64,000 bases of DNA. Origin: Amphiscolops sp. MND2022 (taxonomy: Eukaryota). The stretch is from assembly GCA_964187785.1 (NCBI GenBank), contig OZ076416.1, positions 12,400,001-12,464,000 on the forward strand, written 5' to 3'. Positions 9,270 to 62,197 of this stretch are shown here, piece by piece. Both the position numbers and the translations under genes were made by a program. The notes below the pieces were generated by a model. It saw only the letters and a list, made by a program, of their open reading frames with translations. It was not told where the DNA came from and did no database searches. The stretch's first letter is position 1; the number at the start of each line of letters is the position of its first letter.

Positions 9270-9488
9270 ACCTAGCAAAAAAACTTGCTAGACGTCTCGC
9301 AAGACCTTGCAGAACATGCATTTTCTTGCAAGACTTCTTGCAAGAATCTTGCAAGAATCTTGCAAGAAAGACATTGCACTTGCAAGAATCTAGCAAGCAA
9401 GACCGTAAACTTATTTGCAAGATTTTTCCAAAAAAATTCAACGTGAAAGTTTCGTGCAAGATTTACCAGAGATCACTACAATCCTGGG
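9270..9488. mobile_element. Fragment of a CCCAG-ended element with CTTGCAAG subterminal repeats
   Basis: Repeated (T)CTTGCAAGA units ending in CCTGGG. The left end is unclear. Confidence 0.45.
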
Positions 9489-28700: not shown

Positions 28701-29468
28701 TCTACAAAAACTTGTAAAAAGTTCAAGCAGTTCCAACCAGGGATAGCGCGGAAAACGTAGTGTTACCCAATCTTGTGAAAAACCTTTTGGTCGAACCAAA
28801 AAGTTTGATTCTTACATTGACGTGAATCCGGATTTGGTGAGGCTGTCGCATATTTTGAAATAAACTTGATTTTTTTCAATGCTTGAACTGCATTAACATT
28901 TTTTTGTCCAAATTCTCGGAGTCTTGCATTCAGTTATATATAACTCAATGCATTTTGGAACTTCATCTCTATTCTGAGTAGATAGCCCCTTCGTTTACCC
29001 GCTATTCATCACACATTAAGGATTTCGAACATACTTTCTACAAACTCCATATCTCAGGTTTTAGGAATCGGAAGAAAATGTTCAACTACTTATGCACTCG
29101 TACCTTTTCTTCTCCCGACTTTCAATGAAGCTTTCAAATCTAAAAAACTGTATACGTTTTTTATAAAATTTTGCAAATTACCACAAAAGCTAAGCGGGAA
29201 GGTTTTTTTCTAGGAACTTTTAGGAACGACATTTTGTTGAGCGTATGTTCGAGCGCCCCTAATGTGAGATGAGCTTGGGAAAACGAAAAGACTATCTATT
29301 CAGCATAGAGATGAAGTTCCAAAATGATACCCTGAACTTTTCCAGGCTCAGATGAAGCCCGGCTACAATGGCCCGGTTATCGGTCCCCGGGAGTCAACAG
29401 AGAACAAGCGAGAGTTCACCGAAGAACAACTCAAGGCTGGCGAGTTCATCCCCAGCTTCTGGACCTAA
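25792..29468 (+). CDS. Calponin-family (transgelin/myophilin/Mp20-like) CH-domain protein, ~175 aa, 5 exons
   Basis: Exons 25792-25854, 26275-26408, 26897-26966, 27606-27743, 29346-29468, all phases consistent. CH-domain motifs EVMQWI, LQDVLKDGIILCKL, FQQMENSQAF..AVKAYG, EIFQPVDLVEHRNIAQVLVCLMALAR, then GPRESTENKREFTEEQLKAG. Exon 1 is the least certain. Confidence 0.88.
28204..28742. mobile_element. CMC/EnSpm-like MITE in intron 4 of the calponin-family gene
   Basis: CCCTAGTCGAG...CCAACCAGGG, TSD AT. A partial second copy ends at 28092. Confidence 0.8.
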
Positions 29469-31619: not shown

Positions 31620-32835
31620 CTTTTCGGTCATTTCTCTTTGAAATTTTTCCGCCACGATCCGAAAATCTCGCTACGATACTAATGGAAGCATCCGACCCAA
31701 CGGGTTGTCTTCTAACGTCTTCTCATTTTTCAGAACATTTTCTACGTCAATGAACTCGGCGCCTGTCGGAATAAAAATGTTGACATTAGCCACTACAGAT
31801 TTTCAATTCATGCTTGTCTAATCAAGTTTGTCAGTGGAAAGACACCGTTTTTGATATTGAATCAACTCGCTGGTGGTGTGGTGTGACTGTTCAACAACAT
31901 TACGATACATATGCCGCAACGAACCAGCAAGATCTTGCTAGTTCGATTATCAGCCAATAAAAACGCGTTCATGTTTCAGATACGCGTTACGAGTTTTGCT
32001 CGTTACACTATGTGATTTGGCGTTACGCGTAGAGATCAAAATACAGTAAATGACTACTTTACACTCTCTACAATTACGTACTTTGACTGAAAAAACAGGT
32101 CTGGAGAAACGTTTTTGCCACTGTTGTGTAGTTGTATCATTTTAATATACAATTATATGCTTATAGAAATGTGCTTTTGCTAATTTTTCTGGTTGTTCCT
32201 TGTCGTTAATAGTAGCAGGCGCGGCCACAGAAACTGCTCGTGTTATCTGATTGGTTGAAATCCGAACAGGCACAGTAGCGCGTAGCAGCGTAGTTCCAAG
32301 AGTGTCTTCCCGCGCCTTTCCACGGTCGCTCCGGCTCGAAGGGGAAGCAGTCGCGACCTTTGCCTGGAACCCAAAGCACATGTTAAAGACATCTTACTCT
32401 AAACAACTCAACATCTTCAATGTGCTAGCAAGGATTTTGCGAGGAATACATTCTCCCACGGAATCCAAGGATGCCAATGCCCTAGAACATGTCATTCAAT
32501 GCTAAATTAGGTCATTTTGCAGATTGAAAATGTTTTTTTCTTGAATGGTCAACCAATCTTTTTTCTGTTCTCTACTTTCATTTTTGGCGATGATTGTATA
32601 AAACTGATCAAGTTGTTTCTTGAACTCTTTGACAATGTATACATGGTATACAAACCATGGTTATATTGTCAATATCTTCCATGTCAAGCGTTCCATGTAT
32701 CATGAATTGCCATGATCTTGACAAGGGTACTTTTTGGTACCATGACTTAGAAAGATTAACCATGCTCATGACAAGCGTTCCATGGCTTCGAACACTGGGT
32801 TCATACGATAACATGTAAACCCAAATTTTAAATAA

Positions 32836-35800
32836 TCAAATGCGTTTGAAAAAAAAATTTCGTGAAAACTTGGATAAAAATTGCCCCAGTGGAAACGAAT
32901 TCATTTTTTGAGCAGGAGAGATCATGGTATTTGAGTCCGACGCGAGTGAATCCAGGGCTGGCAACATTAAAATGCATGCAAAAGTCAAGCAATTTGAAAA
33001 AAGGCATAAGTTGTAGTACCTCTTCTTGGCAAAGCGCATCTGGAGCAGTAGGCACCATTCAGGATGCGGAGTTTCTCTGTAAGATCAGCCGTGTCCACAA
33101 ACTTCTTGTTCTTCTCTATGAAGTCTTTCACAACGGGACGGTTCTCTTTGGGAACTAAAAGAAACAAACCGAGAATTTAAAAAAATATCAAATTATATTT
33201 TCGATTTCAAGATTATTTGGGAGTATGGTGTAGTGGTTATAGCATTCGGCCTGTACTGGGACGGTATCAGGTTCGAATCTCTCTCAACTCACTATTGTTG
33301 GTCCTTAAGCAAGTCCTTCATCTTGCTATGGTATGGTCAGTGCCGAAAGTACCAAATTTGGCGGAGAAAAGCAAAATAAAAAAGAGCACGGTGAGCAGTC
33401 AGACCTTTGAGACCTTGAGCGAGTCACAGCTTCAAGTCCACCATTGCTTGACCACTTGGCTGCAAATATGGTACCTTAATATCCGAATGGATTGCCGACT
33501 TAGAAAAGCAGAAGTGCCTATTCGGCGTCCGGGAAATGAAGTTCCTTCTTTTAATGACATTATGTCATCAAATTTCTGTCATTAAATATGTCATTTCTTC
33601 AAACTGATAATGCCGATATTTTTACTAGATTCATAAGTGTTGGCAATTTCGAAATGATTCACTCACTGGACACTGAAGTTTTTTTCAGATTTTTGGCCGT
33701 CAAGTATTAAAGAATCTAGACTACTCATTTTTGTCTAACATTGCACAACAGTTTTTTCACATTTATATGTGACCTGTCAGAGCGTATTTCACCGTTACTT
33801 TTCAATTTAAAAACTCTAATTGTCGCTAGGATGAAAATTATTCTAAAATTAGATATGACGTCATAAGTGTATCTACTCACTAGTCTTGACAATGGGTATA
33901 TCTTCATCAACGCCTTGTTCCAGTTTCTTGGTCAGGATAGCCAGACACCTCCGGGCACATCTCATGATTTCCAGAATGATGGGCAGGTAACTCACTGCAC
34001 CCCCAAACCTCTTCCTCGCTTCCTCCACCCCTAATCTGTACACCTGCACGAGAAAAAGAGCCCTACGTTGACTTAGTACTTATCTGTACTGACCCATGTA
34101 CAGACGAAAGCGCCACAGACAAAAGCGTCCCAGACAAACGCGCCCTAATATAAAGCGCCTCGTTAATGTTCGAGTGGATAACACCTTCCGAGCGAATAAT
34201 TAAACCTAATCGAAGGATGTCTTCAAAGAAAGTAAGAACCTTGGTTGAAAAAGAATGCAATCCTTGCATATTATGCAGTCCTTGAAGGATCTTGCGAGTA
34301 AGTGTTTTCCTTGCAATCATCTTACAAAGAAATGCAATGTTTGGAAATGCAATTGTGAAAACTCGCGGAATTTTTGACACCCCTGGTTCTCAATTTTGGG
34401 GATCTTTATCCCACTTTCTTTTCCAAATTGCGTTTTGAATACCCCATTATGTCAACTTTCAGGTCATTGGAAGATGCACTCTACAAAAATGTTTGTGGAT
34501 TGAAAAAGAACTGGGATTAATTAGTCAAAAAACGTGCTTTGTCATATTTTGTAATTCGGGGCGTTTTTGAGGCCAATTCTAACAAGATATTGCTGTTATT
34601 ACTTTGGAAACACCTACTTCATAGTGTGTGCCTCTTGCGTGCCGCGAACCTAGGTAAATTATCTGGAGCGTGTTCAAGCTTTCATTTAACCAAAAGTTTT
34701 TTTCGACTTTTCGCGGTCACTTTGAGGCAATTTTCACCAGAAGTCAGCAAGTATGTCTTCGGAAAAGTCTTCTAGACAAAGAATTTTTCCGTTTTTGAAC
34801 AGTTTCAACATTCTTAACCACGAAGTCTATTGAAAATTTGACAAAAATGAATAAGTATTTTGAAAATCGGAAAATTTTGGAGTTTTTGTCTCTTTCGGTG
34901 TAAGTTAGAGACACTTTCATTTGAAAAGTGCATTTTTAGTCGGCGCTTTTGTTTATAAAAGAGCCCGACTATTACAGTCACCCGTTTTTATTTTAAGACA
35001 GACTCGAAGCGAAGAACGTTATAATTAACGTTCAACTACTAATTACAAGTTTTGAGTTTTTTTCGGCACTGTGCGACTTTTTTCGAATTTTTTTTTGTCT
35101 CCAAAGCGTCCCACTTCAAGTTTTTTGATATTTTACAGCAAATTGAAGTTTCAAAAAGCCCAAAGGGTCTCCCCTTTCAAGTTTTTCGGCACTATGAGAC
35201 TGTTCAAAATTGTCATTTTTCGTCTGAAATTTGGTTTTCTCAGTATATATTTACCAATAATTTTTCCAAAACTATCCGAAACTTGGACGTAATATCCTGA
35301 GTAAAGCGCTATATCCGAATTTTTGAAGTTATATCCGAATTATGAAAACGTTAAAATTTGGGAGATCTCAGGGGCCATTTTTGGTCATTCTGCGGTCATT
35401 TTGGTCATTCCATAAAAAATCCAAAAATCTCTACAAATGCGTATTGCACGAAGCAAATATATGTGATTTGAACCTACAACTTGAATATAAATTTGAATTT
35501 GGAACATGGCATATTTCGTTTGAAAAACGAGGCTGATTTAAAAATTTTCCCCTCCACATATGGAATATGGGCGGAAACTAACAAAGGTCAATGAAGTAAC
35601 CTGTTGATGTGGGTAGTCGACTCTGAGCTCGTAGAAGTCGTAAGTTTTGGGCAGCATTTCCTTGATTCTGTTCAACAGGGTGATTGCTTCGCAGCAATCC
35701 AGGTTCTTCCTGATTGCAGGGGTGAAGGTCCTCTCGAAGTAGTCCACCATTTTGTAATAGTAGTCTTCGAACTTCTCGTACAAACAGAAAAACTCACGCG

Positions 35801-38800
35801 CCGCTCTGAAATTAGGCAAAAATGAGGCAAACTTCTTAGGTTATCAAACCGCCTTTGGTTCATTCGACTGCATTTTTTTAGATTGAGGGGACCAAGAGTT
35901 GAAGAAAACCGATTTTACTGACGAAAAATTTCAAACCTCATATCTTGGGTTAATCTAACAAAATTTCTTGACATTTAATTGGTTGACTCAGATTTACTAC
36001 CGTCTGAAAGGTTTTTGGCAGAAAAAGAGGCTTTGAAGCATTTTTTCAACCAATACCGAAGTAAATAATGAGAATTTATGAATATTGAATTTATGAAAAA
36101 TGGGTGTTTAGACAAAATTTAGTAATTGACACACCCCATTCTCATATTCAAAACATCATAAGTCAACGTCAAGTTAAGATAAAAAGACGTTCTAAACAGC
36201 ATTTTTCTCCTTCAAACAAGGGCTTTCCACATGCTTTCACTTGCAATCATAGTTGTGTGGACGTTTCCTGACTTTAGGTGGCTTGAATTTGTATAAATGT
36301 TGATTTCCGGTCTGAAAGTAAAGAAAAATGTCATTTCCGGTCTCAGGGGGTAGGGGGGTATCTGCTATCGGCTGTAGCTCATTACGCCCAACAAATTTTC
36401 AGCAGGGTACGGACATGCTAAATCCACAGCTTCATGCTCAAAACTGGCATTTTCCCAAATTTTCGGGGTAAAATCGGAGAAGTGTTTATGAAAGTCGTCA
36501 AAAATCAGTTTTTTGAGAATAGAAATTTTCCAAAAATCTAAAGGGGCAAAAAATAAAAAAAACGTTCTTCTGTCATTTTCAATGGTATGTTTCATTTAGA
36601 ATCGAATACAAATAACCGGAGGAATGTTTTTTTGTTGCTTTTTGTCAACCAAAGTTGATTTTTCTCGAAATTTTGAATGTCTTGGTTTTATTTCTCTTTG
36701 AAGCATTGTCCGAGGAACCCAATAGAATTTTTATATCCAAAAATAGAGGCTATTTCTGTGGTCTCAAAAAAAACTCTCGGTCTCATCTTCAGAATCCTTC
36801 GAATCATGATCGATCGTCATAGGAAAAAGCAAAAGTAGTACCTTAAATGGACGGCATTCATTGATGATTTATCTTGAATGTACTGTTCTATTTGCTCCAT
36901 CGTCCTGATCTCCGAGGTTCCACTCTTGTGATCTGGCATCATTTCTATTTGTCTGGCTTCTTCCAGAGCCACGACCAGAGCCTGTTGTTGGTGGGAGAAG
37001 ATCTCGTACTGGTTTGCGAGCTGGTAGAAATCCTTTTTCAGGGTCTCAATGTCATTCTCACCCCACAATTGGCTGAAAACGTACATTTTCGAAATGAACC
37101 AGAGCCGCATATGCGGTAAAGGAATTGTCGGAAACGGATTCAAATGAAAAACAAATTACCTACTTTATTGTCATTTGGTCTAATTTGAGGATATGTTTCT
37201 CAGATCGCAGTGTTACAATTTTGATGTTGTCATTGCACACATAGAACCCTAATATGGTGTAAAATGACTGTAAAAAATCGTTCCAATCGTATGGACAGTT
37301 TGAGAAAATCGAAAAAAGTCCAAAGTGACCATAATTTGGTCATTTTTAGACTGACTTTTACTGTGTTTCTCAGATCCTAGTCATACGATTTTGATGCCAT
37401 TGCGCACGCAGGAGTACCTTTGGGTTAGAATGACGATTTTGACGATTTAGTTTTTAGGGCAAGTTGCTTCACGTCCACGTTTACTTCATACATGATATCA
37501 ATACGTTTTTTTTTAATTTTAAAAGAAGGAATTAAAAAATTATCAGAATATCAACTAACATATACATTGCGTGGTTTTTCAATGGAATGATATTACAGTT
37601 CTGGGCTCTTTTGATGGCCATGGTTGGTTTTCTGCACCCTCCGCGACCGTTGCTAACAAGGCCCCCGCAAGCCTGGTTAAAAGCCCCCTGTGCAGTGATG
37701 GCTTCAGCGGCTGTTCTGTTGGAACTGTAGAAGGTACCCTGAGCGCCCCCTACCGCCCCCGGGTTGAACTGGGTCGGGCAACATCTGACACGGTTCTCTT
37801 CCTGTGAAAAATTCGAAAAAGGTACCCAAGTGAACGCTGTTGTGACCTTTGAGTTTAAACTAGGGTCAAGCAAGCTAGGCCTGATCACCGGGAACTATAT
37901 CTCGTTTTGTAAAAAAGTAGAAAATCAACATTCTATTTTCAAATGTATTATTGGCCTCAATGACAATAATGTTAGTCTGTACAAAATAAAAAACTGACAA
38001 ATAAACATTCCGTTGTTGACAAATATTACTAAACAATTTCGAGATAGCAACGTTCGAATATCAAAAAATAATTTTTCTATGTATTTTTGCGAATGATTCC
38101 AGATTTCTAAATATTTTGCGGTCGGGGAGATTCGAACTCAAAGCCTTTGGATTAGAAAGCTTCAACCATTTGGCCATAGCGCCTTATTCTTGGTCGGTTC
38201 GATTTCAAATTTATTTGCAAACAAACTTCTTTTCTATGCAACATTCGTACATCCAGAAATTTCAGTTCAACTTACTATCAGTTAACGTCGAGCTGCTAAG
38301 TAGCTGACCCAACCTCAAGGTGAGTGAGGCCCGCGCTAAAGTTGAACTAACTTAGTTTAGGTTCCTCTTCTCCCGTTTTTGCATCTTGGATACCCTGGGG
38401 AGTATTTGGATTGGGTATTGAAGATTTTTTAAAGGTTCGGGTCTGAAAACTCTTGACATGTTTCATAATTTTTGGCAAGATCTCGGGATTCCAGCCGAAC
38501 CGTAACTTGGATTCCATTTTGGATAATGGTGACTTTAATCTAATTGTATCTTACATTGCTGAAGACATTGAATAAGCTTGACATCTCGGATATGTTTAGG
38601 AAGATCCTGATACATCTCTGAAGTTTACTAGTCGTAATAGTACCATACGAATGGTGTCTTGATCACACTTGATACCAAATGAGATCAAACACAGTGAGGT
38701 CAAAAAGCGAAAGTGAGATCAAAAAGCGAACGTGAGGTCAAAAAGCGAAAGTGAGGCAAAAAAGCAAACGTGAAGTCAAAAAGCGAAAATGAGGTCAAAA

Positions 38801-41800
38801 AGCGAAAGTGAGGTCAAAAAGCGAAAGTGAGGTCAAAAAACGAAAGTGAGGCAAAAAAGCAAACGTGAAGTCAAAAAGCGAAAATGAGGTCAAAAAGCGA
38901 AAATGAGGTCAAAAAGCGAACGTGAGGTCAAAAAGCGAAATTGAGGTCAAAAAGCGAAAGTGAGGTCAAAAACCGAAAGTGAGGTCAAAAAGCGAAAGTG
39001 AGGTCAAAAAGCGAACGTGAGGTCAAAAAGCGAAAGTGAGGTCAAAAACCGAAAGTGAGGTCAAAAAGCGAAATTGAGGTCAAAAAGCGAAAGTGAGGTC
39101 AAAAACCGAAAGTGAGGTCAAAAAGCGAACGTGAGGTCAAAAAGCGAAATTGAGGTCAAAAAGCGAAAGTGAGGTCAAAAACCGAAAGTGAGGTCAAAAA
39201 GCGAAAATGAGGTCAAAAATCGAAAGTGAGGTAAAAAAGCAAACGTGAAGTCAAAAAGCGAAAATGAGGTCAAAAACCGAAAGTGACGTCAAAAAGCGAA
39301 AGTGAGGTCAAAAAGCGAAAGTGAGGTCAAAAAGCGAAAAGAAAATGTTTGACCCACCTTGCAATAGATGCCCCCGTTGGCATTGGGGAGTCCACAGTTT
39401 TCGATGCCACTCACAACCGTGTCTGCGGGTACACCAAACTTCTCCCCCTTTTTGGGCGCACACCTGTTATAGAAGACCCATATTTTAACACATACTATAT
39501 TCAAGATAAGTTATAAGTTTTGAAAATACTTCAATAATGAATAATGAAAACAGAAGAAGTTTGACAAGATAAAACTTGAACCAACGCAGAGAGTTTAGGC
39601 GTTGGAATTCAGGAAACAGAGAAACTGCAGAAGTTAGTGGTACTACTAACTTGGTTATAACATAGTCCCACCGACCGCTAAATTAACAATTCAAGCTGAA
39701 CAAACGTGTTAAAACTAACGCGAGAGAACGATGACACAAAAAATTTGAGATGAACAAGAAAAGGACGCTTTTTCAAAAACCAGAATAAACGTATTTAACT
39801 TCTAGAGGGTACACAAACGTGTTGAAAGACCCCAACTTCAATCTTCAACTTTGTCGCAGTTGTTATTATTCCATTTTTTTCTGGATCAAATGTTTTACTT
39901 GATAAGAACTGAAAGAGTTAAGCCTAAATACAGTACAAGACGTCCTAATGAAACTTAATGAAACGCTCTTTCTCAAAGAATTCTCATGAGAACAAATAAA
40001 ATGATCCGACGTTAAGTTCGTGAGTGATTTTTTTATAATGTTAACACTTACTGGGGGCCGAATCCTTCTGGAAACTGTGAATCACAGATCATGTCGCAGT
40101 CTCTAAAACAAACAAACAAACAAAATTTAATTAATATTATGTTAATTCGCTTGCCAGTTAACAAATGACACCCATACAAATGAATATAAAAGTTATTTTT
40201 CCAGTGTCATGATTCTTGTTGATTTGATGAGCCCAGAATTTTTCTGTGACTAATAAAAAGTCACCACAACGTGGTGACGACGGAGTATGTATTTTATATC
40301 TCTTTTATATAACCAGAGCCGCATATGCGGTAAAGGAGTCGGCTTAGGTCTTTTTCCTTTTGACTCGCTCCAATCCCAGAATCATACGAATTTATTGAAA
40401 TTGCACACATAGGACCATACTATGGTGTAGAAAATGACTGTAGAAATTTTTGTTCGAATCGTATGGACAGTTTTTGAGAAAAACGAAAAATGGCTGTTTT
40501 TTGGCCATTTTTGGGCTAATTTTGGCTATGTTCCTCACATCCCAGCCATACGATTTTGATGCCTTTGCACAGGGGCCCCTTTGGGTGTAGAATGACTGTG
40601 CAAAATTTCGTGAAAATCGTATGGACAGTTTTTGAGAAATTTGAAATTTTCATGAAAAGGTCGGGAGAAAAAAAACGAAAAATAACAGCACGATTGCATA
40701 AGTAGTCGAAAATTTTTCCGACTCCTAAAAATCAACGGACTAAAAAAATTATAGCTATAATGCTATAAAAACTCAGGTATAAAATTCATTATAGCTATTA
40801 AAACATTGATGACTCTTGTCCTATCAGAAAGAGTACCAGAAATAGTCAAGACAGTTTAGGGCTCGTTCTGTGCATATTTTTTTTCCAGTTAATCAATTCA
40901 GAATACACAAAAAAGTGATCAGCCAGAACAAATATCTCCACCAATCACATCAACCCAGTTTTTACCTTTTCCCAACTTTGGTCTTCCTGAAAACAAGTTA
41001 GTTGGAAGTCAAGCTAGCTGGCATTAGGTGACAAGTTAGTAACACTGGGACATTTACCGCCCAATTTGCAAAAAAGTTCCTATCGAACACTGGATTCGAA
41101 CTCGTTACCCTTCGATTGGAAAGCTTTTAATCAAACAAAAAAATTCACATACAATTTGAAGCCCGGAGACTCCTTCCACTTCCTTTAAAACTAAGCGATT
41201 TTAGTTGAATCATAGCTTGACTGCAGTTTTTTTAAAAAAAAATGATCATTGACAGAGACGAAATTTTTCCAACATTGTAATTGATTGTGCGTGCTGGAAA
41301 ACACACCACAATTTTTTATTCATAAACAATTTCCAGAGAATTGAAAAATAATCTCAAGTTGACCCAACCGACAAAATCAATTAAATAGATAAAATTTAAG
41401 ATAGAAAACAAACTCATTCAATAGATTCAAAAAAATCGGACTTAATAAAGAAAAACCAGAGCCGCATATGCGGTGAAGGAGTCGGCTTAGGTCTTTTTCC
41501 TTCTGACTCGCTCGAACCCCAGTCATACGAATTTATTGAAATTGCATACATACCTTTGTTGAAACTTCTTGAACTTTTTGCATGTACTTTAATGTTGCCA
41601 GCAACTTTTATTATGATTTTCTAAAACTCTTATGGAAACTTTAATGAGAAAATATTTACCTGTTGTATTCGACTTTTATCAAGCTGCTTGAAAGATTCAT
41701 CAAAGTTTTGGCGGCAATTTTACGCCTTGAAGTTTTGCAGGTTTCATTAAGTAGCAGTTCTAATTTTAATAGCAAATAAATTGCTCTCAGTTTAACAGCC

Positions 41801-44800
41801 ATTTTAATGCAAAATTACTTCAGTCACCTAATAAACTGCAATATACTGTCATGTTTAGCGTCCTATTTGAGACGCGGTGATCACATCAGATGAGTAGTTG
41901 AGAAAGCAAATTGTAAATACAATAAGGTCGTGTCGTTGATGATGTTGTATCTATTTTCAAATTTAATTGCAGTAGTGGAAAATGCAGTGTAATTCTACAA
42001 GATTTACCACCTGAATTACCCTGAATTTTCTAGGTTTTATAAACAATTACCCTGCATGCAGGCCTGCAGCATGTAAAAAGTTCCTGCAGTCTCAACTAGG
42101 GTAGGATCATATTATGGTGTAGAAAATGACTAGAAAATTTCCTTCGAGTCGTGTGGAGTTTTTGAGAAATCGAAAAAAGTCGAAAAATGGCTGTTTTTTG
42201 GCCTCTTTAGGGTTAATTTTGGCTACGTTACTCATCCCAGCCATACGATTTTGATGCCATTGCACATATAGGACTCTAATATGGTGTAGAATTACTAGAA
42301 AATTTCGGTCGAATCGTATGGACAGGTTTTGAGAAAATCGAAAAAAGTCGAAAAGTGACTTTTTGGCCACTTTTGGTCTAATTTTGGCTATCTTTCTCAG
42401 GTCCCAGTCATTCGATTTTGCTGTGATTGTGCACACTGGAGCACCTGTGTAGAATGACTGTGCCAAAGTTTCTAAAAATCGTGCAGATAGTTTTCGAGAA
42501 CTTCGAAATTTTCACTGAAAAGTCGGGAGAAAAAAACAAAAAAAAACGTCACGATTGCATAAGTAGTCGAAAAATTTTCCGACTCCTAATAAAACGTCTA
42601 GTCGCTCTGTATCATCCCTGCATGCATTCAAAACATGAATGGTTTTTGCGGCAAACTTACATGAATCTCTCAGGATGCATGCCTGGTTTCCTCACATTTG
42701 GGTCATCAGGGCAACAAATGCCCCCTTGACCCAAGGCCCCTGGTACCCCGGCCACGCCCCCCGAAACGGGAGCAACTGTGAAGCAAGGCGTCCCAACAGG
42801 GGTGGGGCCTCCGGGGTAGGTGGGGGGACAGCCGGCGATCGAGGGTGTTACGGGTGCATTGGGTGCGCAGTTGTATGTCAGGGTGCCATTGGGTCCGCAG
42901 GTGTAAGTTTTGGTGTTGTTGGGTCCGCACGCGTAAGTCCCGGTGACGTGGAGATCGCCGGCGTATTTTCCAGTGCCATTCGGTCCGCAACCAGCTGAAA
43001 AGAAAACAAATTCAACGCTCAGATAAGCACAAATTGAATAGTCAGATATGAAAATAAGATCTGAATTTCTACGCAGATGATTCTTCAAAAGAACATTGTC
43101 CTTATGGAACACCCTATCGAGAAAAATGATGATAAAGAGGAAAGCTTCATACAAAACATTGAATGAAAGAGTCCGATATTTTTTTTCCGAAAGATACGAA
43201 AATGAAATGGACCGACCAAAAAATGGAACAAAATTTTGCAGTGTTTACCGTTTCACATGAAAAAATAATCGCTTCCTTTTACCCTTCAATTGCATTTCAA
43301 TTATTTAAATTGTATACACTGCCTCTTGAAATAGGAATGTGTTTTTAGTCGGCGCTTTTCTAGTGAAAAGAGCCCGACTATTACAGTGGCTAGTTTTTTA
43401 GTCGGCGCTTTTCTAGTGAAAAGAGCCCGACTATAACAGTGGTTAGTTTTTTTTCGTCAGACCACAGACCTCATCGCGTATGTACCACTTTTTAGTACAG
43501 ACTTTACTCGGTTCACGGTGAACCCAGCGGTCACAAGTTCGAGTCCTTGCTTTAGCCAGAAACTTTTTCGAGCATTTGTGAAAGTGGACGAGACTGAATG
43601 GTCCCCTCTTTCAATTTTTTGCGGCACTGTGTGACTTTTTTTCGATTTTTTTTGCCTCCAAAGGGTCCCCTTTAATTTTTTTGTTGTTCTGCAACAATGC
43701 AACAAACTGGATTTTCAAAAAGCCCGAAGGGTCCCCCTTTTACATTTTCAAAAACTTTGCTCTTTGTGAGCCTCAGATATAGCGCCGACTTTAAACGTTC
43801 TTGTCTTGTTCTTTTACTACTTTGTTAGTAGGAAAGAGTGTTTTATTGTAGCCATCAAGTTCCAGTGATTTGAGTGCTAAAACTCGCGAAAATTAAAATT
43901 CACGTATTTCGGGGTTCAACGCCCTAGTCAAACAAAAATGACAAAAATCTTCTACGGGTTTCATTTACTATTAAAGGAACTTCTTTTCTTTCGGGCATTG
44001 GTAAAAAAATTGGCATTTTAATTTTTTTCTCCTGACACCGTTTTATCTTCTGTCAGCGCTGCTCGGAGATGTGCACTGGAACACTTCGAAGTTCATGGTT
44101 GATAGTTTTTTCAAAACTTATTACTCAGTAAACAGAGCGTTATTGAAATTGCTTGATAGTGCTTCGGCAACCACGCTTGTGGAAAACACGTTCAAGGAAA
44201 CTCAGTAAGTTCAAAAAAGATCCATGTTAGTTAACTACGTTGTGGTAACTCTTAATCTGTCCTTGAATGGCTTGCTGCTTGAGAAAAGATTTTATCCCAA
44301 GTCACTTTCATCCCAGGTATCTCAAGTAGTTTTCCACAAGTGTGGTTGCCCGAAGCACTGAGATACCTGGGATGAAAATGACTTGGGATAAAAAATTTTC
44401 TCGAGCAGCAAGCCATTCAAAGACAGACTAGGAGTTACCACAACGTAGTTAACTACCATGGATACTTTTCGAACTTACTGAGTTTCCCTGAACCAGTGCA
44501 AATTATACTTTAAAAAATGACTAGAAAAGAAGCTGCATTGTCCAAAAAAGCTTTGCGGAAAGAAAAAAGTAATTTTTTTAAGGATTTAAATATACACAGC
44601 TTTAAATACACACAGATTTAAATATACACACAGATTTAAATATAAATGAGCAGAAGGTATTTTACTCCCGACTTGATCAAAAATACCCACCCTAAATATC
44701 CAAATTCAAATCAAGTTGAGATCACCATTTTATATTTCTTATGAATTGACTAATAAATGTCTAAACCTAAATGAAAAACCCTGCTGTTCGAATGAAGCAG

Positions 44801-56800: not shown

Positions 56801-59800
56801 TCCAAAACCAGAACTGGAATCTCCTGGAATAGAATCAGAATTTCAACTAAAAACAAACCAATCGGGGCTCTTCATTGCAAACTAGTCGGAGTTTCTAACA
56901 CCAAAGTGTTGAATAGCTAAAACAAACTGGAAAGCCTGAGACTCAAAAATAACAAAGTCTCTCAAATGGAATGAGGCTCTCATTGAAGAAACTTTTACAG
57001 TGCAGAAAAGCATTAATGGGTTGTTCCTATAGCTCTCTCGGAATCTTGCTTGGAAGTTGTAGAAGAATTGCTCAACTTGTAATAAGCAACGAACGTTGTG
57101 TTTAACCTTTAACCTTAAAACCTAACTCTGCTCTGCGTTATTTCTGCTACTCAGGCAAATCTTTATCTATAAAAGTATGAGTGCTTTCGGGATCCTTCAA
57201 AATCCAGAATTGGAACTCGAAAAAAACGGCAAGCAAAGTATTTTGTTTCGCTATGGTACTTGATTCTTGATACGTTCAAAATCCCATTTTGTCGCGTCCG
57301 GTTACCGACTTCGAATTTTTACGAAATGCCAAAAAATGCCAAGGACTAGACCGGGATTGGTAAGGACTTGATAACTTTTGAAAACTGGAACTTCCCTCGA
57401 TAGTCTTTGGAATCCGTGCATTATACTCGGCTAAGGACTTGTGTCCACTGGATTGTCAGTACGGACGATTTCTGCATAGAAAGAATTCACGTTTAGTTCA
57501 CGAGATGAGAAGCCATGAAATATTCGATCTATGTTTTAGAGCTAGTTTCCAATAAGAAGAAAATGTAACTTGAAGAATATTTACACGGCTTTTTGTCAAT
57601 TCAGCACGACACCCTGCGTAAAAATCAGACAAGACTATATAACCCGAATACCGAATGTCGAGATAGAACTAACAGATAATTAAAAAAATAATAATTCACG
57701 TAAATTTGCAAATGCCGTGAATTTCGGCTATCTTATCTCATTACTAGAGCCTGGCTAGATTCGGTGACTATCTAGTTTTTGTCTTTGAATTTTGCTAATT
57801 TCTTACGACGTCCTTCCTTCGTGTTATATGAAAAAACTCGTGTCCAATCACATCCGAGAACAGTACTGACGTCAATAACCGAGATAAGAAAATATTACTT
57901 CCACAATGCATTCATTGGTCTTGTTCGTGTTTTGTATTTTCTGGGAAACAAAAGTGGCGGAAAAATGAGCTTGACAAACCTTCGCCCTCGTACTCGTCGT
58001 CATTGTAATTACCGCCAGCGTCATCGTACCCATCGTCATCATCGAAGCCCCCATCATCGTCACCCCCGCCTCCTCCCCCTCCGCCTCCCCCGTCACTCAT
58101 GTCCCTCTGGGCCTGATCGAATGCATCCTGGTCGGCTGCAGCGCCTTGAGAGCCTCCTTGGGACTGAGAGCCCCCTCCTCCCGTGGACTGACGGGATCTT
58201 TGCGATGGGCGGGTCTGAAAAAAATGAAGTATGTGTGTGCGGTAGAGCTAATGTCTTCATGCTTATGTAAAAACCACTGTGAGAAAATAGTCAATCATGA
58301 ATTTAGTTATTCAAGATTGCTTGAACTTTTTACATGCTGCATGGAGACATGCAGGCTACTCTTTTTTTTTACAAAACATGGAAAATTCAGAGAAATCCAC
58401 ATTTTCACTGCCGCGATCACTTTGTTTTCACGCGTAAAATTCTCAAGTAAGTACCTTATGTAGGCACCGTTAGTCAAATAGCACGCTGAATATGACGCTA
58501 CTTTGAAATTTAACAATTGACTGAAGTTTAAAATTGATGAAGGTCTCGGCTGCTTTCAAAATTAGAACTGTGTCTTAATGAAACCTGTAACACTTCGCGG
58601 ATCAGAAATACCGCCGAATTTAGGATCCATTTTACAGGCAGCTTGATACAATTAAAGCGAATCAGTAAGGGTTTAATGCAATGACGTTTCCTTGAGATTT
58701 TTATAAAAACATGGAAAATTAGATTCGTAACCAACAAAAACTTGTGAAAAGTTCAAGCAGTTCTAACGAGGGTTATCAACAACCTGCCAAAGTTAGCCAA
58801 AGTGGCAATATTAAACTATTCGCCGTATCAAGATACGTCATAGAATACAGTTTTCACACATTCGTTCTGACTAGAATTACTAGATGAATTCGCAAGCCGA
58901 TTACAGTGTGACTACGAAAAGAACAATGTAAGATTCGACAACAGATACTAACAACATTAAACATAAATACCTAGGCCTTTTCCAAGGTTATTTTGACGAA
59001 TTCAAAGATTATTTAGATTTCGACTAGTAAGGGTCTCCCTAGTTGAAACTGCAGGAACTTTTTTCATGCTGCAGGCCTGCATGCAGGGCAACTTTTTATA
59101 AATTAAATTCCACTACATTACGGACACGATCACTTTGTATTCACACTTTGTTTTCTCAACTACTCATCTGATGTGATCACCGCTTCTCAAATAGCGCGCT
59201 GAATATGACGCTAATTTGCAGATTATTACGCGACTGGAGTTATTTTGCATTAACTTAGCGGTAAAACTGATGGCGACTTAATTGCTTGTAAAATTGAAAC
59301 TGCTGCTTAATGAAACGTGCAAAACGTCAAGGCTTAAAATTGCCGCCAAACTGTTGATGAATTTTTCAAGCAACAAGAAAAAAGTTGAACAGGGAATATT
59401 TTCACATGAAGGTTTCCTTGAGAGTTTTAGGAAATCATAATAAACGTTGCCAGCAACATTAAAATACATACAAAAAGTTCGAGCAGTTTCAACAAGGGCT
59501 GAAAAAGATGAACAATTTGTATGATCTGGTTTTCTGTATGCGTTACTCATTATCCAGCGTCTGACACCTTGCAACACTGATTCCCAGTGTTTTGGATTTC
59601 CTGAGAAGGTCCCGCTTGCATTTCCTGCAAGGTCCTAACAAGAATTCCAAGTTATCCGACGCTGGGCTACCTTTTACGGGAAGTTGCCCTGGCTAGATTG
59701 CAAATCAAATTTGGGTGATTTTTCCAGTGATACGGGTAACAAAACAGTTATCAAAACATGGTGTCATTCTTCCCTGTTTTTTTTTGTAGGAATGGGTTTG

Positions 59801-62197
59801 TGGTAGCGATTAAAAGGGCAACCATAGTGATGACAAACATACCTGCCAGTTGAACAAATTATTCAAACAAAAGATTGAACAGCACCATATTGGTCTTAGC
59901 GAATTAACATACAGTTGTCACTTGCTCATTCTTTTTAACGAGATTATACGACTCGATCACATGGCGCTGCGGGAGATGCATTTTTTTGGCAAGATGCATC
60001 AACAGAGAAGGTATGAGTGGAGCCGGTGGATCGAACTTTTTGAAGCCACAATAATGGCAAAATCCTCAATCTCCCGTGATGAATTGAGCAGAGATGCCAT
60101 AACAAACGCCAGAAGAAAGGAGCTGATGGACGGGCCAGAAGAGTAGATAGCCCAGAAAAACGCAGTCAGTTTTCTTTACATCGCGCTCGGAGAAGGGACA
60201 AGGAAGACATTATTTGACAGAAAACCAAACATGGACATAAGAATCAAGAACTCGCCCAATCTGATGAAAGCATGTCAAGACGCTTTCCAAAAGACTCGTG
60301 GGCAGACACAAGTTCTTCAACCGAAAGCAAAAGGAAGGAGAGGGAAACACTCGAGCAATTTTGGCACGCGCTAAACGGACTAGCATGAAACTGCGACTTC
60401 GGGTCGAGGGCTACCAGCCGAGTCTTTGTTATCTCTGTTTCCGACATGAAACCCGCATCCGTCCAAGAGACGCTAATTACCGAGCCTCAGGGCAATCCCG
60501 AAAAAGCGCTAAAATTTGCCAACGCTTTTGAACAGGACTCACAGCAGAAAAAGACAATTTGTGTGAAGCCCATTAACATTAAAGAAGAACCAGTGCTTGC
60601 AGTGGAAAAGTACACTGAGTGTTATAAATGCGGCGAGAAGCCATTTATCACGAGGTTATGAGAAGGTCTGCAAAGCAAAGAACGTAGAATGCAGAAAGTG
60701 TGGAAAAACCGGGCATTTTGCGTTGCTCAATTAACAATTCTGCTCAACCCTCAACAAAGTCGGATTTAACTTTGTCGGATGTTTTTAGTCGGCGCTTTTC
60801 GAAGAAAAACGCAGACTATAGTAGTGACTTCTTTTTTTAAGACCAACGAACTGACAGATTTTATAAATTTTATAAGTTGGCACTAACACTAAGCCGGCAC
60901 TAACACTAAACCGTGTCACACTACTTCACTGCCACTTGGCCACTACGGCTTTTTCGAGGTCTGACAAGCAGAAGGACATGGGTTCGAGTCCCGCCATGAC
61001 CAAAAATTTTTTGTGCAATTTTTTTTTCGGCTTTGTGAGACTTTTTTCGCAAATATCTCCAAAGGGTCCACCCTTCATTTTTTTGTCTATTTTGCAAAAA
61101 AATGGATATTAAAAAACTCACAAAGGGCCCCATTTTACATGTTTCGGCACTATGCGACTTACGGGTGACCAAAAAAAATTTTGAAAAATTTCAAAAAAAA
61201 TCGGAATTTTTTTTCCAATTTTTCCTCAAACGGGTACTGTAGAAGAGAAAACTTGACACTTTGAAGTCCTTCTGTTATTTTTGAGCCTTAGATATGGCGC
61301 CGACTTGGGCGGTTCCCGGCTTGTTTTTTCTAGATAAGTAAAGTTAAAATTGTATATTCTTATATCCATGCACTTTTCACAGATCAGTAAATAGTTTTTC
61401 ACGAGAGATTACGTTTAAGAAGTCTAATACGCAATGTGCTATCATATCAGTTTGTTTCTTGATCAGCGCAACCAAACATGTTTTTCAACCTCTCATTTTT
61501 GCATGACTAGTTTCGAGTTTTGAGTTCATGTTTTTTTTAACTTGGAAAATTGAAGAATTGAAATTTCCGTGTACAGACAAAAGCGACTCAGACAAAAATC
61601 CCCCAGTTAAAAGCGCCCTTATGCAAAACGTATACTAATCTTGTTCATTTCACCGCCTCTTGTTCAAATACAAAGTAAACTCACTTGGAATGCCAGATTT
61701 GATATTTTCACGCCTAACAAATCTCAATTAAAAGCGACTCAAACTGCATTTTTTGGCATTTCTGAACGAACTATATCAACTTTGTTAATGAATCAATTTG
61801 TGAAAACACTGGTTTGAGATCAAATACTAATTATTATTAAATTGGAGTCAGGAACTTAAGATTAGTGGTAGAAAAGAGTCAGCAATTCCTTTCTAGCCTT
61901 TGATTGAGGCGCTTATGACTGGGGCGCTTTTGTCTGGTAACCGAAACTTCACTAGTGCCCCATCCGTCGAAACTTCTAACATGACCGTTCTCGTGCTAAA
62001 AATCTATGAATTATCAAAGAAACTTCCAAGTTTCTGATTCAATCGTGTTAGGATGACACAAACACTTTGACCTCGTAAGCAATGAAAACACTTACTGCTC
62101 GTGACCCCCCGGCTGTGGATTGTCTCGCTTGGGAGCCAGTGGCCTGGGAGGGTCTTGCCTGGGAGCCTCCCGCTGCCGCTTCATCCTCGTCTTCCGC
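32836..62197 (-). CDS. SPACA9: SPACA9-like microtubule-inner protein with a long N-terminal extension (at least 731 aa, at least 13 exons; start codon not identified)
   Basis: Exons 62197-62096, 58214-57980, 56823-56800, 46905-46743, 45992-45859, 42994-42661, 39463-39358, 37801-37560, 37072-36842, 35805-35601, 34043-33881, 33154-33020, 32957-32836. All introns are GT-AG and phase-consistent, total 2196 nt. Exons 9-11 match recalled SPACA9 motifs: QYEIFSHQQQALVVALEEAR ~ KYKLFQQQQLTFTAALEHCR, and ELRVDYPHQQVYRLGVEEARKRFGGAVSYLPIILEIMR ~ SLRAKYPHDVVNHLSCDEARNHYGGVVSLIPLILDLMK. Confidence 0.75.
33020..33154 (-). CDS. C-terminal exon of the SPACA9-like gene
   Basis: PKENRPVVKDFIEK...CSRCALPRR; phase 1/1; followed by a 62-nt intron. 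Confidence 0.7.
33219..33290 (+). pseudogene. tRNA-derived segment (SINE head or tRNA pseudogene)
   Basis: A-box-like TGGTGTAGTGG and B-box GGTTCGAATC are present, but the acceptor and anticodon stems do not pair well. Confidence 0.5.
33881..34043 (-). CDS. SPACA9: SPACA9-domain exon
   Basis: VYRLGVEEARKRFGGAVSYLPIILEIMRCARR; donor GTgagt. Confidence 0.85.
34933..35345 (+). mobile_element. 3'-truncated HINE-like family 1 copy
   Basis: TTTTTAGTCGGCGCTTTT start and typical internal blocks; no terminal hairpin. Confidence 0.55.
35601..35805 (-). CDS. SPACA9: SPACA9-domain exon
   Basis: AAREFFCLYEKF...ELRVDYPHQQ; phase 2 to phase 0. Confidence 0.85.
36842..37072 (-). CDS. SPACA9: SPACA9-domain exon (first helices)
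   Basis: QLWGENDIETLKKDFYQLANQYEIFSHQQQALVVALEEARQ...EIRTMEQIEQYI; acceptor ttttcAG, donor GTacta. Confidence 0.85.
37560..37801 (-). CDS. Cys/Gly-rich exon immediately upstream of the SPACA9 domain
   Basis: EENRVRCCPTQFNPG...NHAMY; donor GTtagt in phase 2, matching the next exon. Confidence 0.7.
38117..38183 (-). pseudogene. tRNA-Arg(TCT)-like degenerate segment, probably part of a SINE-like repeat
   Basis: GGCGCTATGGCCAAATGG...TTCTAATCCAAAGG...GAGTTCGAATCTC. Related downstream flanks recur near 62400-62560. Confidence 0.45.
38693..39340. repeat. 20-bp minisatellite (AGTGAGGTCAAAAAGCGAA[A/C]), about 32 copies
   Basis: Uninterrupted tandem units with recurring variant blocks and no spacers. 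Confidence 0.95.
39358..39463 (-). CDS. Cys/Gly-rich exon
   Basis: CAPKKGEKFGVPADTVVSGIENCGLPNANGGIYCK. Confidence 0.75.
40311..40731 (-). mobile_element. HINE-like family 2 copy
   Basis: AACCAGAGCCGCATATGCGG...CCGACTCCTAAAAA. Confidence 0.7.
41452..42590 (-). mobile_element. HINE-like family 2 copy split by a MITE
   Basis: Both family-2 ends are present. The consensus CATA-GGACCAT junction is interrupted at 41552/42102. Confidence 0.7.
41553..42101. mobile_element. CMC/EnSpm-like MITE nested in the HINE
   Basis: CCTTTGTTGAAACT...CTCAACTAGGG, TSD TA. Homologous to 59037-59498. Confidence 0.8.
42661..42994 (-). CDS. Cys/Gly/Pro-rich exon with YxCGPN repeats
   Basis: GC-rich open frame; acceptor ttttcAG, donor GTaagt. 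Confidence 0.8.
43342..43810 (+). mobile_element. HINE-like family 1 copy with tandemly duplicated 5' end
   Basis: The ~51-bp 5' block occurs twice (43342 and 43393); degenerate 3' subTIR near 43782. Confidence 0.65.
44159..44492. repeat. Interleaved inverted repeats, A-B-rc(A)-rc(B)
   Basis: A = 44159-44189, B = 44191-44324, rc(A) ~44326-44358, rc(B) = 44359-44492. Confidence 0.85.
45101..45328. mobile_element. Small GGG...CCC TIR element carrying five TGACTCA repeats
   Basis: Imperfect ~27-bp TIR and 15-bp tandem units TGACTCACTTCTT(A/G)A. No clear TSD. Confidence 0.45.
45859..45992 (-). CDS. Internal exon
   Basis: GDLEMSQNFIACNNEEFQQAACYAGGMGYPDIHAKKGTPPWNGL; donor GTaagt. Confidence 0.8.
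46743..46905 (-). CDS. Gly/Lys-rich internal exon
   Basis: GNIKKGSSGGGGGGGNKKKKGEIG...NCAPRYK. Confidence 0.8.
50576..50903 (-). mobile_element. Internally deleted HINE-like family 2 copy
   Basis: GAGCCGCACATGCGGTAAAGGAGTCGG start; ends at AAGTAGTCGAAAAT. Confidence 0.65.
51558..51568 (-). promoter_or_regulatory. Polypurine tract
   Basis: AAAAAGGGGAG immediately before the 3' LTR start TGTGG. Confidence 0.9.
51833..56470 (-). CDS. Gag-Pol polyprotein, 1545 aa (Gag with two Cys/His knuckles, protease, RT, RNase H, integrase)
   Basis: CWRCG...H...C and CNYCGKKGHLEKVC; IDTGS; VDMTYAYGQ and FIDD; CDASKQGLGA; HFGH...CPQC; DFAG, TDPG, VERM. Confidence 0.97.
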   Translation of the reverse strand: MALRAEEDSSNSPLPGVTYFWQDADKPPSYDWEQWRQLFEVAVLARHSISITELLRVADQQNPRQAALMGNLEENHAKRKVVSLLYISIGKTGRKMLMDKFPQINILTIQLQDIAQNCEECFQVRRNRTLDRHTFLSRKQKPNETLHQFWNILNGLAAKCDFGNQTEGLVYDIFVLNMANKQVQEKLCTEPKDNPADALQFAIAFEDGLKRQRTYGYINQETKIKEEPVCSVSGAKQNNRECWRCGAANFTLDHLNRCKAPNSMCNYCGKKGHLEKVCNQKKSDNNQNFGKNRGFAKRVQLVDQEENDDEDGNYMVLNIEGNDNNTKPYYMEGFINGNRFKTMIDTGSPVTIYALDEIKKIMKREKLPVREMVENERYVDFNGKPLHLLGYVFCELQVNDSYVKKARILIAKKGTKSIIGREWLSTLNYQVTPEQKGEFEVNSIEKDQELSVETKQFVKEFPKLFERRGKVTNHKVKINFKADAKITQQKGRRIPIQLQKAVDKEIGRLLKEGHIEKINEIKDDVFIQPTVITVKKDRSVKIALDARALNQAIDKDKYQMPNVENLLDMVAEKLDVETGEAWFSSVDMTYAYGQVPLHISTAKHCNFQIIGGESTGTYRFVSGFYGLSVMPTEFQKVMDSLLAKFREVFVFIDDILIVTKGTKNEHLDKVREILKTLDNAELQLKAGKCKIAQSEIEWLGFKMTKDGISPVNTKVQAITEKLRPENLKELRSFFGAVNQFNKFIPDLASICFPFRSILKKDATWKWTPEHETAFIRVNNEVKKAAELTHFKRNKPLRIICDASKQGLGAVLQQCEENEWKPISYASRFLTELESKYSINELELLAVVWSVEHFKNYVYGVPFGIVSDHKALQSVLKSNKGNKTYSSRLTRWVDRLLPFDFSIVHTPGRTLGMADYLSRHPSNYEGASIQAEKLFNDWFTVNVVKDVTPKVKGLENWRQPIRSRERENSERTNVNSVLTVHAPMQTNKESIEIVNPQNSDEMAFNSEKPVSKISDVYIQANAEEDRIIQKVKSLIQNKNNAIIARLPPPWREKFNSFSVSDNGLLYMDNRLVIPKNMRENVLRAIHFGHAGRDAMLKEAADVWWPRVHREVVEKAKNCPQCQLAGKNLKCIKSQNEFGKIPESTEPNEEIALDFAGPFQNANQKKKYLLVSVDNHSGWPDALFLPNPTTEKVIEFLSEYIAANGIPKRIRTDPGTVFKSEKFKQFCTKHFIDHTVCPVRDHRGNGKVERMIRTINERLRTNKEIIISKEKEGLPRILFALRSEKGSDGKSAFEKHMGRKPNTPKSRLIEKCILEKDPAIEIEPEDFSEEADSTIFVRERVRGSKLESAFKKVRGQIVRQSENTVTVVPKTNNKEVTYSKRDVASSSKTISKDKKPKQKKFEKGTKMPKTSDMPNKSEKAQLKRKLIESDSESEDIGQPPNPELYIAPIPAGKQTDEKSQQQIEIKEDADCSENPEDQNTAIEEKDETQKVPVSGTVKWEKARSSSRVSKKPDRWGHNIMVTKIEAMSSAEEESLPSVFEIKNPNTN
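56455..56469 (-). promoter_or_regulatory. Primer-binding site, tRNA-Ser type
   Basis: TGGCGCTGCGAGCAG directly follows the LTR-terminal CA. It is complementary to a ...CTGCTC(A/G)CAGCGCCA 3' end, as recalled for tRNA-Ser(CGA). Confidence 0.8.
56800..56823 (-). CDS. 24-nt micro-exon (G-DSSSGFG-G)
   Basis: ctattccAG|GAGATTCCAGTTCTGGTTTTGGAG|GTaagt; symmetric phase 1/1; Gly/Ser content matches neighbouring exons. Confidence 0.55.
57980..58214 (-). CDS. Gly/Ser/Asp-rich low-complexity exon
   Basis: TRPSQRSRQSTGGGGSQ...DGGGGGGGGGDDDGGFDDDD...EGE. Confidence 0.75.
58238..58905 (+). mobile_element. Solo LTR related to the Mag-like element, with a nested MITE (~58305-58772)
   Basis: TGCGGTAGAGCTAAT...GATTACA with 5-bp TSD GTGTG. 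Shares AACAACCTGCCAAA and AAAAGTGGCAA blocks with the intact LTR. Confidence 0.75.
59037..59498. mobile_element. CMC/EnSpm-like MITE
   Basis: CCCTAGTTGAAACTGC...GCAGTTTCAACAAGGG, TSD CT. Confidence 0.85.
59799..60725 (+). pseudogene. Mag-like relic: 5' LTR, PBS and frameshifted gag
   Basis: TGTGGTAG...GATCACA (59799-59961), then TGGCGCTGCG. Translated fragments YEWSRWIELFEA, VSFLYIALG, RHKFFNRKQK, ALKFANAFE and CYKCG/CRKCGKTGH parallel the intact Gag. Confidence 0.8.
60782..61328 (+). mobile_element. HINE-like family 1 copy with tRNA-like cassette
   Basis: Colinear with and closely similar to 6570-7110 along its whole length. Confidence 0.75.
62096..62197 (-). CDS. Most 5' exon identified for the minus-strand gene
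   Basis: AEDEDEAAAGGSQARPSQATGSQARQSTAGGSRA; ttgttcAG acceptor, GTaagt donor, phase 0/0. Confidence 0.75.

Follow-up and report, generated by a model that had tools for sequence, protein, structure and literature searches.

Whether a SPACA9 domain can form part of a much longer protein is the question raised by a 64,000-nucleotide stretch of DNA from Amphiscolops sp. MND2022 (contig OZ076416.1, positions 12,400,001 to 12,464,000; hereafter the window). In cilia and sperm, SPACA9 coats the inner wall of the microtubules; it is among the few microtubule inner proteins that decorate both singlet and doublet microtubules, and its small size is thought to matter. The original prediction, made from the letters of the window alone, described 13 exons that splice in frame over 32836-62197 and join a SPACA9-like domain to an N-terminal extension of at least 446 amino acids. 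Our analysis makes it likely that a long-form member of the SPACA9 family is encoded here by a single large gene on the minus strand, predicted to span at least 51.6 kilobases (kb); of its exons, which number at least 18, the window contains 13. The SPACA9 family is already known; the sequence comparisons support the long-form architecture as new.

Gene model and exon structure

The window is gap-free, AT-rich eukaryotic DNA (GC content ~38%). Stop-free segments on its minus strand, from 62.2 kb to 32.2 kb, contain the exon pieces, and exon borders were set at canonical GT-AG sites in these segments. The resulting model has 13 GT-AG exons on the minus strand from 62197 to 32206, which splice in frame into 729 codons with no stop. 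Four sequences serve for comparison in the list that follows: the Symsagittifera roscoffensis locus on OY783239.1 (L001), its 338-amino acid SPACA9-like protein (P0001), a 2488-nucleotide metagenome contig from a related animal (L010), and the Convolutriloba macropyga RefSeq protein P0006.

Exon 1, 62096..62197, minus strand: internal, phase 0, encodes AEDEDEAAAGGSQARPSQ..., part of the Ser/Gly/Ala/Gln low-complexity region
Exon 2, 57980..58214, minus strand: Gly/Ser/Gln low complexity, poly-Gly run, acidic Asp/Gly/Tyr patch
Exon 3, 46743..46905, minus strand: GNKKKK basic patch and conserved motif DPEPFDAWVQFKNLNCAPRYKR
Exon 4, 46361..46402, minus strand: DNDQMFACFPITD; kept in L001 and L010 with identical phases
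Exon 5, 42661..43017, minus strand: Cys/Gly/Pro-rich CGPN-T-TY repeats, lineage-expanded; 5' boundary uncertain
Exon 6, 40052..40102, minus strand: DCDMICDSQFPEGFGPQ; kept in L001 (8905-8955) and L010, GTAAGT donor, equal phase
Exon 7, 39358..39463, minus strand: CAPKKGEKFGVPADTVVSGIENCGLPNANGGIYCK; also within P0006
Exon 8, 37560..37801, minus strand: Gly-rich stretch with a CC motif, then PTMAIKRAQNCNIIPLKNHAMY
Exon 9, 36842..37072, minus strand: start of the SPACA9 domain; domain residue 1 is model residue 441
Exon 10, 35601..35805, minus strand: middle of the SPACA9 domain; 58% identity to P0001
Exon 11, 33881..34043, minus strand: last helix of the SPACA9 domain (VYRLGVEEARKRFGGAVSYLPIILEIM); 80% identity to P0001
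Exon 12, 33020..33154, minus strand: linker and first half of the C-terminal Cys module (...KFVDTADLTEKLRILNGAYCSRCALPRR); 83% identity to P0001
Exon 13, 32206..32363, minus strand: second half of the C-terminal Cys module; stop codon TAA at 32208-32206
Upstream exons, 65114-64926, 73182-73121, 73709-73638, 81968-81780 and 83769-83705, minus strand: GT-AG, in phase

The exon set and reading frame of the original prediction held, but both of its ends were wrong. Its 3' limit at 32836 falls in intron 12; the true last coding exon, at 32363-32206, is 80% identical to P0001 and 82% identical to the C. macropyga locus, and a polyadenylation hexamer (AATAAA/ATTAAA) is present at 32146, 60 nucleotides downstream of it. 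At the other end, 62197 directly follows a strong acceptor (a T-rich tract and CAG), so exon 1 is internal and not the gene start. Its donor is GTAAGT, and its frame agrees with exon 2 and with the GSQAKPSG repeats of S. roscoffensis. An ATG at 62197 was rejected as a start codon because it is out of frame with exon 2 and these repeats. A start just upstream of exon 9 (ATG 37085, MYVFSQ...) was also rejected; this ATG is not conserved in S. roscoffensis, and the site is a good acceptor.

The flank beyond the window was taken from the same assembly, with upstream positions given as window equivalents. Five further in-phase GT-AG exons were found there, reaching ~19.8 kb past the window end and contributing 192 residues of GSQARPSG-type repeats. 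With these exons the extension comes to at least 632 amino acids, the protein to at least 921 amino acids, and the gene to at least 51.6 kb. The most upstream of them (83769-83705) opens at an acceptor with a split codon.

A large extension is therefore real, although the count of 446 amino acids was not reproduced: 432 are encoded upstream of exon 9 within the window model. The difference lies at the acceptor of exon 5, which is uncertain. The strongest site (42994) is out of phase with exon 4, and two weaker ones (43017 and ~43060) are in phase; the ~14 codons between these two explain the discrepancy. The predicted junction of exons 8 and 9 (37560/37072) is in frame and completes an Ile codon (AT|C).

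Membership in the SPACA9 family

SPACA9 is represented in Pfam by PF15120, with a gathering score of 25 bits, and the window protein was scored exon by exon. Exon 11 scored 21.4 bits (E value 2.3e-4) and exon 10 scored 13.5 bits (E 0.06), single exons being short for a clean call. Exon 9 alone had no Pfam match and no SPACA9 among its sequence matches in the Protein Data Bank (PDB). A six-frame genome search with PF15120 gave 18.7 bits for exon 11, and all 6 matches of this exon to PDB sequences were SPACA9 chains (E 0.002-0.011).

The orthologue gave a cleaner result. An exhaustive phmmer search with exon 9 led to P0001 (E 3e-16), which is XP_063722261 of the acoel S. roscoffensis and carries the name 'sperm acrosome-associated protein 9-like'. 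P0001 scored 48.2 bits against the cut-off of 25, over positions 10-149 of the 164 in the profile, and matched solved SPACA9 chains at E 1.6e-11. Exons 8 to 13 of the window gene are 52-83% identical to P0001, exon by exon, over its full length. A profile built from the acoel orthologues and two paralogues of the window genome (A1) matched six SPACA9 sequences among solved chains, at E 5e-33 to 9e-31. In the A1 alignment, residue 1 of the solved chains corresponds to residue 441 of the model, which lies 8 residues past the start of exon 9, in agreement with the prediction that the domain starts at the exon 9 boundary (37072). The tblastn alignment of the window model to a canonical paralogue in the same genome (L003) begins at Met-1 of that protein; the E values were 6.6e-14 for L003 and 1.6e-27 for a second, long paralogue (L007).

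AlphaFold modeled the C. macropyga orthologue P0006 with a predicted local distance difference test score (pLDDT) of 65-92 across the domain. When this model was searched against the PDB with Foldseek, the top 22 matches were all SPACA9 chains (probability 1.00, template modeling [TM] score 0.60-0.75), and the next match had an E value of 0.48. The SPACA9 fold has been reported to be unique, a four-helix bundle with short capping helices (PMC9564825). Taken together, the hidden Markov model search on which the original prediction depended came out in its favor through P0001, profile A1 and the exclusively SPACA9 fold matches, and by these sequence comparisons the domain in the window gene is SPACA9. 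A representative search also returned P0003 (3231 amino acids), a bacterial LapA/RTX adhesin matched via repeats, which was discarded.

Architecture of the extension and the C-terminal module

From the N terminus to the C terminus, the protein consists of Ser/Gly/Ala/Gln-rich repeats of the GSQARPSG type, a poly-Gly and acidic segment, a Lys-rich patch, a Cys module, the SPACA9 domain and a C-terminal Cys module. The repeat region is probably disordered. Exon 2 carries the poly-Gly run and the Asp/Gly/Tyr acidic patch, which is collinear with the end of a large S. roscoffensis exon, and exon 3 carries the Lys-rich patch with the motif DPEPF-AW-QFK-NC-RYKR. Exons 3 to 8 encode a conserved module of ~200-320 amino acids that keeps nine Cys across species and ends in IIPLKNH(A/S)MY. 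The elements named in the original prediction were all present, namely Gly/Ser/Gln/Asp low complexity in exons 1 and 2, GNKKKK in exon 3, and the Cys/Gly/Pro-rich stretch of exons 3 to 8, which has 20 Cys in the window. After the SPACA9 domain (exons 9 to 11), a linker leads to a ~60-residue Cys module (CxxC ... C ... CxC ... CxxxC) with seven Cys in the window gene and eight in the orthologues. This module is conserved more strongly than the SPACA9 domain.

None of the N-terminal exons had a match when each was searched against Pfam, and the 807-amino acid product annotated upstream of P0001 in S. roscoffensis has no Pfam match on record. Neither Cys module has a relative in Pfam or the PDB; for the C-terminal one, both were searched by sequence without a match, and relatives of it were found only in three acoel orthologues. 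With a six-sequence alignment, neither the N-terminal nor the C-terminal part of P0006 reached a pLDDT of 50 in AlphaFold.

Canonical SPACA9 proteins begin with the domain and have ~160-225 amino acids. In the window gene the first residue of the domain is residue 441 of the model, or residue 633 or later when the upstream exons are counted, and in S. roscoffensis ~900 residues precede it (the 807-amino acid model plus exons 6, 7 and the 5' part of exon 8). The new domain architecture that had been proposed is supported by three or four related taxa and by the second long paralogue. The departure from canonical SPACA9 concerns architecture and not the domain family.

Two smaller observations were made in the extension. 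Exon 5 shows a lineage-specific expansion, with ~119 amino acids of CGPN-T-TY repeats compared to ~30 amino acids in S. roscoffensis and L010, and a second frame of this exon is also open for 101 codons. At the end of exon 3, an R-Y-K-R motif (window 46743-46760, minus strand) is conserved in three species and fits the consensus of a dibasic processing site.

One gene or two

By sequence, the window gene is orthologous to XP_063722261 of S. roscoffensis and to LOC142353512 of C. macropyga. A convergent calponin-homology (CH) domain gene lies downstream in all three species (window position 26290-29462, plus strand), which supports the orthology of the three loci. Homologues of exons 3 to 8 are found upstream of P0001 in L001 with the same order, strand and intron phases. 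In tblastn searches, exon 3 matched L001 at E 2e-12 and L010 at E 1.7e-12 with equal intron phases, and exon 7 matched L001 at E 2e-11, L010 at E 5e-12 and L013 at E 3e-9. The 3' end of exon 5 (...PERF, donor CAT|GTAAGT) corresponds to ...TRY in S. roscoffensis and ...TQY in L010. Within their own genome, exons 3 and 7 matched only themselves and are hence single-copy.

The locus could instead hold two neighboring genes, a SPACA9-like gene of ~317 amino acids that starts at a Met in exon 8 (ATG 37621) and a separate gene made of the upstream exons. RefSeq divides the S. roscoffensis locus in this way, into an 807-amino acid gene that ends at L001 8259 and the separate gene for P0001, and the gene call (P0007) on a 1224-nucleotide JGI contig (L012) suggests a start at the same Met. 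However, the stop of the 807-amino acid model is a TGA inside the exon 5 donor (CAT|GTGAGG), which indicates that the model reads into the intron, and the conserved coding exons 6 (8905-8955) and 7 (9450-9555) lie unannotated between the two RefSeq genes. The RefSeq model of S. roscoffensis joins exons 8 and 9, and the C. macropyga RefSeq protein P0006 (422 amino acids, LOC142353512) unites exon 7, all of exon 8 and the SPACA9 domain. In four species no stop interrupts the exon 8 frame between the acceptor and the Met, and this stretch contains a conserved CC motif. In L010, exons 3 to 10 lie within 1.7 kb in equal phases with introns of 56-155 nucleotides (62 and 75 nucleotides for the gaps between exons 7 and 8 and between exons 8 and 9), which leaves no space for a terminator and promoter between exons 3 and 10. 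L012 is intronless at all positions where the genomic loci have introns and is therefore most easily explained as derived from cDNA; before the Met its frame continues without a stop for 52 codons of Gly/Pro/Thr/Cys-rich sequence. Finally, all 5 differences between two sequenced samples in exons 8 to 10 are synonymous in the model frame, 3 of them upstream of the Met, and the flanking introns differ by many substitutions and indels. Two separate genes are, in our judgment, improbable. Still less credible, and close to refuted, is the idea that the upstream exons are noncoding or that the gene is a pseudogene. Exons 1 and 2 and the five upstream exons, being of low complexity, could derive from simple repeats, and the N-terminal exons lack Pfam matches; yet 18 exons with canonical splice sites join in phase without a stop, the protein sequence of exons 3 to 8 is conserved in three or four species (E down to 1e-12), and the exonic polymorphisms are all synonymous.

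It is also conceivable, though on balance unlikely, that both forms exist: a long protein from a distant promoter, and a short, nearly canonical form with the C-terminal Cys module, beginning at the exon 8 Met (ATG 37621-37619, model residue 413), made from a promoter in intron 7 or by cleavage, with only the short form entering the lumen. Conservation of the Met and of the IIPLKNH(A/S)MY segment before the domain would fit such a short form, as would the R-Y-K-R motif kept in three species, and the long form poses a steric problem of the kind seen when a green fluorescent protein (GFP) tag impairs SPACA9 (bioRxiv 10.64898/2026.06.14.732105). Nothing points to an internal promoter, however; a canonical short SPACA9 of 402 amino acids (L003) is already in the genome, so that a short isoform is unnecessary; and the second long paralogue retains 770 amino acids before its domain in one exon.

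A single gene that encodes the long protein therefore remains our preferred interpretation. The original prediction, which placed the upstream exons and the junction of exons 8 and 9 in one gene, is supported by the comparison of L001, P0006, L010 and L012; we found neither a SPACA9 gene set apart from the upstream exons by a promoter of its own nor a failed family search. The analysis also corrects public annotation. On the same sequence evidence, the S. roscoffensis locus (L001 8157-9555) is probably a single gene annotated as two, and the C. macropyga model P0006 seems to lack its 5' part.

Several observations, including the RefSeq split described above, count against this interpretation. 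Searches of sequencing runs found the locus in genomic runs of one study only and in no RNA run, and we thus infer transcription across the junction in Amphiscolops sp. from the related loci. The four genomic runs had even depth over introns and no exon-exon joints at the locus, which is neither for nor against splicing. The exon 8 Met has a good Kozak context (ACCATGG in the window), is conserved in 5 of 5 sequences, and could start a short isoform. A weak acceptor is required at the junction of exons 4 and 5. The 5' end of the gene and its start codon were not found within 30 kb past the window, and the extension may therefore also include a signal peptide or a further domain. With regard to function, tubulin or SAXO contacts of human SPACA9 have been assigned to Q20, Q21, H37, T61, R64, Y117 and N123 (PMC9564825). 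We mapped these by hand through the alignment of the profile to the mouse chain (residues 1-150), assuming that mouse and human numbering are the same. Three of the seven are kept (Q21, R64 and Y117) and the others differ (Q20H, H37M, T61V and N123Y), so the binding mode may differ as well.

SPACA9 paralogues in the same genome

A search for other SPACA9 paralogues, as the original prediction had suggested, was carried out on the six-frame translated assembly with PF15120 and found three further loci. L003 (G000:C1:6810039-6811247; L003 1489-2697, plus strand) encodes a canonical-style SPACA9 in an intronless open reading frame of 402 amino acids that scored 60.8 bits. In this protein the domain (MDEIREKLDDLEDRYY...) comes first, and the tail is rich in Ser. 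L004 (1087-1824, minus strand; G000:C8 ~37.961 Mb) is a multi-exon SPACA9 paralogue whose last exon shows the C-terminal motif in a weaker form (LRLTNGKICSLC...EPARVWRGA...), suggesting that the link between the SPACA9 domain and the Cys motif predates the window gene.

The third locus is the second long form (L002/L007, G000:C8:36277343-36280252; L007 5344-8253, plus strand), a single-exon open frame of 970 codons in which a C-terminal SPACA9 domain (68.8 bits) follows ~770 residues of Ser/Gly-rich sequence. It is present in the protein collection as P0004 (955 amino acids), and a relative from another assembly, P0005 (794 amino acids), is 80% identical in the domain. Because this frame is unbroken and needs no assumption about splicing, it is direct evidence that SPACA9 proteins with long N-terminal extensions exist in the lineage and are maintained there. 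No similarity was detectable between the extensions of the window gene and the second long paralogue. Besides the window gene, the genome therefore carries another long form, which is independent of it, as well as a short form of the canonical type.

Comparison with known proteins

The window gene and mammalian SPACA9 (7UN1/7UNG, 8OTZ, 8TO0 and 9CPC, among other structures) share the helical domain (profile E 5e-33; orthologue fold TM 0.67-0.75), the motif YPH...ARxxYGGxVSxxP, and, by the hand mapping above, the equivalents of Q21, R64 and Y117. They differ in what surrounds the domain. Mammalian SPACA9 has 160-225 amino acids with the domain first and a basic unstructured tail, whereas the window gene has at least 632 amino acids before the domain and a conserved Cys module of ~95 amino acids after it. 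XP_063722261 and LOC142353512 resemble the window gene in exon identity (52-83%), C-terminal Cys module, downstream CH-domain neighbor and intron phases. In contrast, their public models begin at or near exon 7 or 8, and exon 5 of the window gene is ~85 amino acids longer. The second long paralogue has a similar SPACA9 domain (33% identity, E 1.6e-27), a long Ser/Gly-rich extension with poly-Gly, and a short Cys/Pro stretch; unlike the window gene, it consists of one unbroken exon, its extension is unrelated, and it has no C-terminal Cys module. MNMIP1 (SH3D21; PMC13373224) offers a precedent for a single-file seam complex that contains SPACA9 and a lattice-threading chain, one arrangement by which a long extension might be housed. 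However, MNMIP1 is a separate protein to which we claim no sequence relation, and in the window gene the long chain is fused to SPACA9 itself.

Fit in the microtubule lumen and proposed mechanism

Human SPACA9 sits on the lumenal face at 8-nm intervals, bound where the two tubulins of a dimer meet; in doublets it appears as striations, and in sperm singlets as nearly complete spirals (PMC9564825). In the manchette, SPACA9 follows the seam in a single row together with MNMIP1, a protein that threads through the lattice (PMC13373224). Human SPACA9 is impaired in vitro by a GFP tag of similar mass to its own, an effect that the authors of that study attributed to steric limits in the lumen (bioRxiv 10.64898/2026.06.14.732105). 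Our volume estimate assumed a lumen 7.5 nm in radius, a repeat of 8 nm and 1.21 cubic angstrom per dalton. On this basis, the human protein (24 kDa) takes up ~25% of the lumen volume with twelve copies. The same number of copies would require 82% for a 730-amino acid protein and 138% for a 1225-amino acid protein; a single copy of a 730-1225-amino acid protein per 8 nm would occupy 7-12%. The concern that so large an extension would be hard to fit in the lumen was thus reasonable, given that full decoration would need 82-138% of the volume, and the layout of the full-length protein is hard to reconcile with dense lumenal packing.

A protein too large for dense 8-nm decoration suggests sparse binding, a position at microtubule ends or openings, or an extension that leaves the lumen. 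In our proposed mechanism, the SPACA9 domain would hold the protein to the inner wall of microtubules in cilia or sperm, as in mammals. Binding would be sparse, for example in single file as at the seam. Alternatively, the protein could sit at microtubule ends or openings, with the flexible extension passed out of the lumen, or it could be processed. The cysteine modules might bind metal or cross-link to other structures. More speculatively, acoel SPACA9 paralogues with flexible, Cys-bearing extensions of several hundred residues joined to a lumenal anchor could fill the lumen as a continuous internal scaffold or form an inside-out tether that threads through the wall, like MNMIP1 at the seam, and connects the interior of sperm or ciliary microtubules with structures outside, an idea that we regard as doubtful. 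We know of no description of an inside-out microtubule tether made by a single polypeptide.

A conserved natural fusion with 630-900 residues before the domain could show, as an experiment of nature, what amount of cargo the lumen accepts and by what route lumenal proteins enter it. In acoel sperm the axonemes are unusual and cytoplasmic microtubules are prominent. In view of this, the expansion within this lineage of a protein from the lumen of sperm microtubules may be a concrete lead for ultrastructural work.

Repeats and retroelements in the introns

Intron 2 contains a Ty3/Gypsy-type retroelement (window 51836-56551, minus strand) with an unbroken gag-pol-like frame of 1572 codons that includes zinc knuckle, protease, reverse transcriptase and integrase motifs. 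The S. roscoffensis orthologue also has a related retroelement in one of its introns (L001 15.3-19.5 kb). Introns 8 and 9 (window 37120-37450 and 36120-36500) contain very high-copy repeats, with contig depth of 1e4-1e5 compared to ~60 for unique sequence, and translated fragments of this repeat family recur at ~40.4-42.5 kb and 50.5 kb in the window and in L010. A form without 36075-36485 (411 bp) was seen in 4 of 4 runs and is probably an insertion polymorphism.

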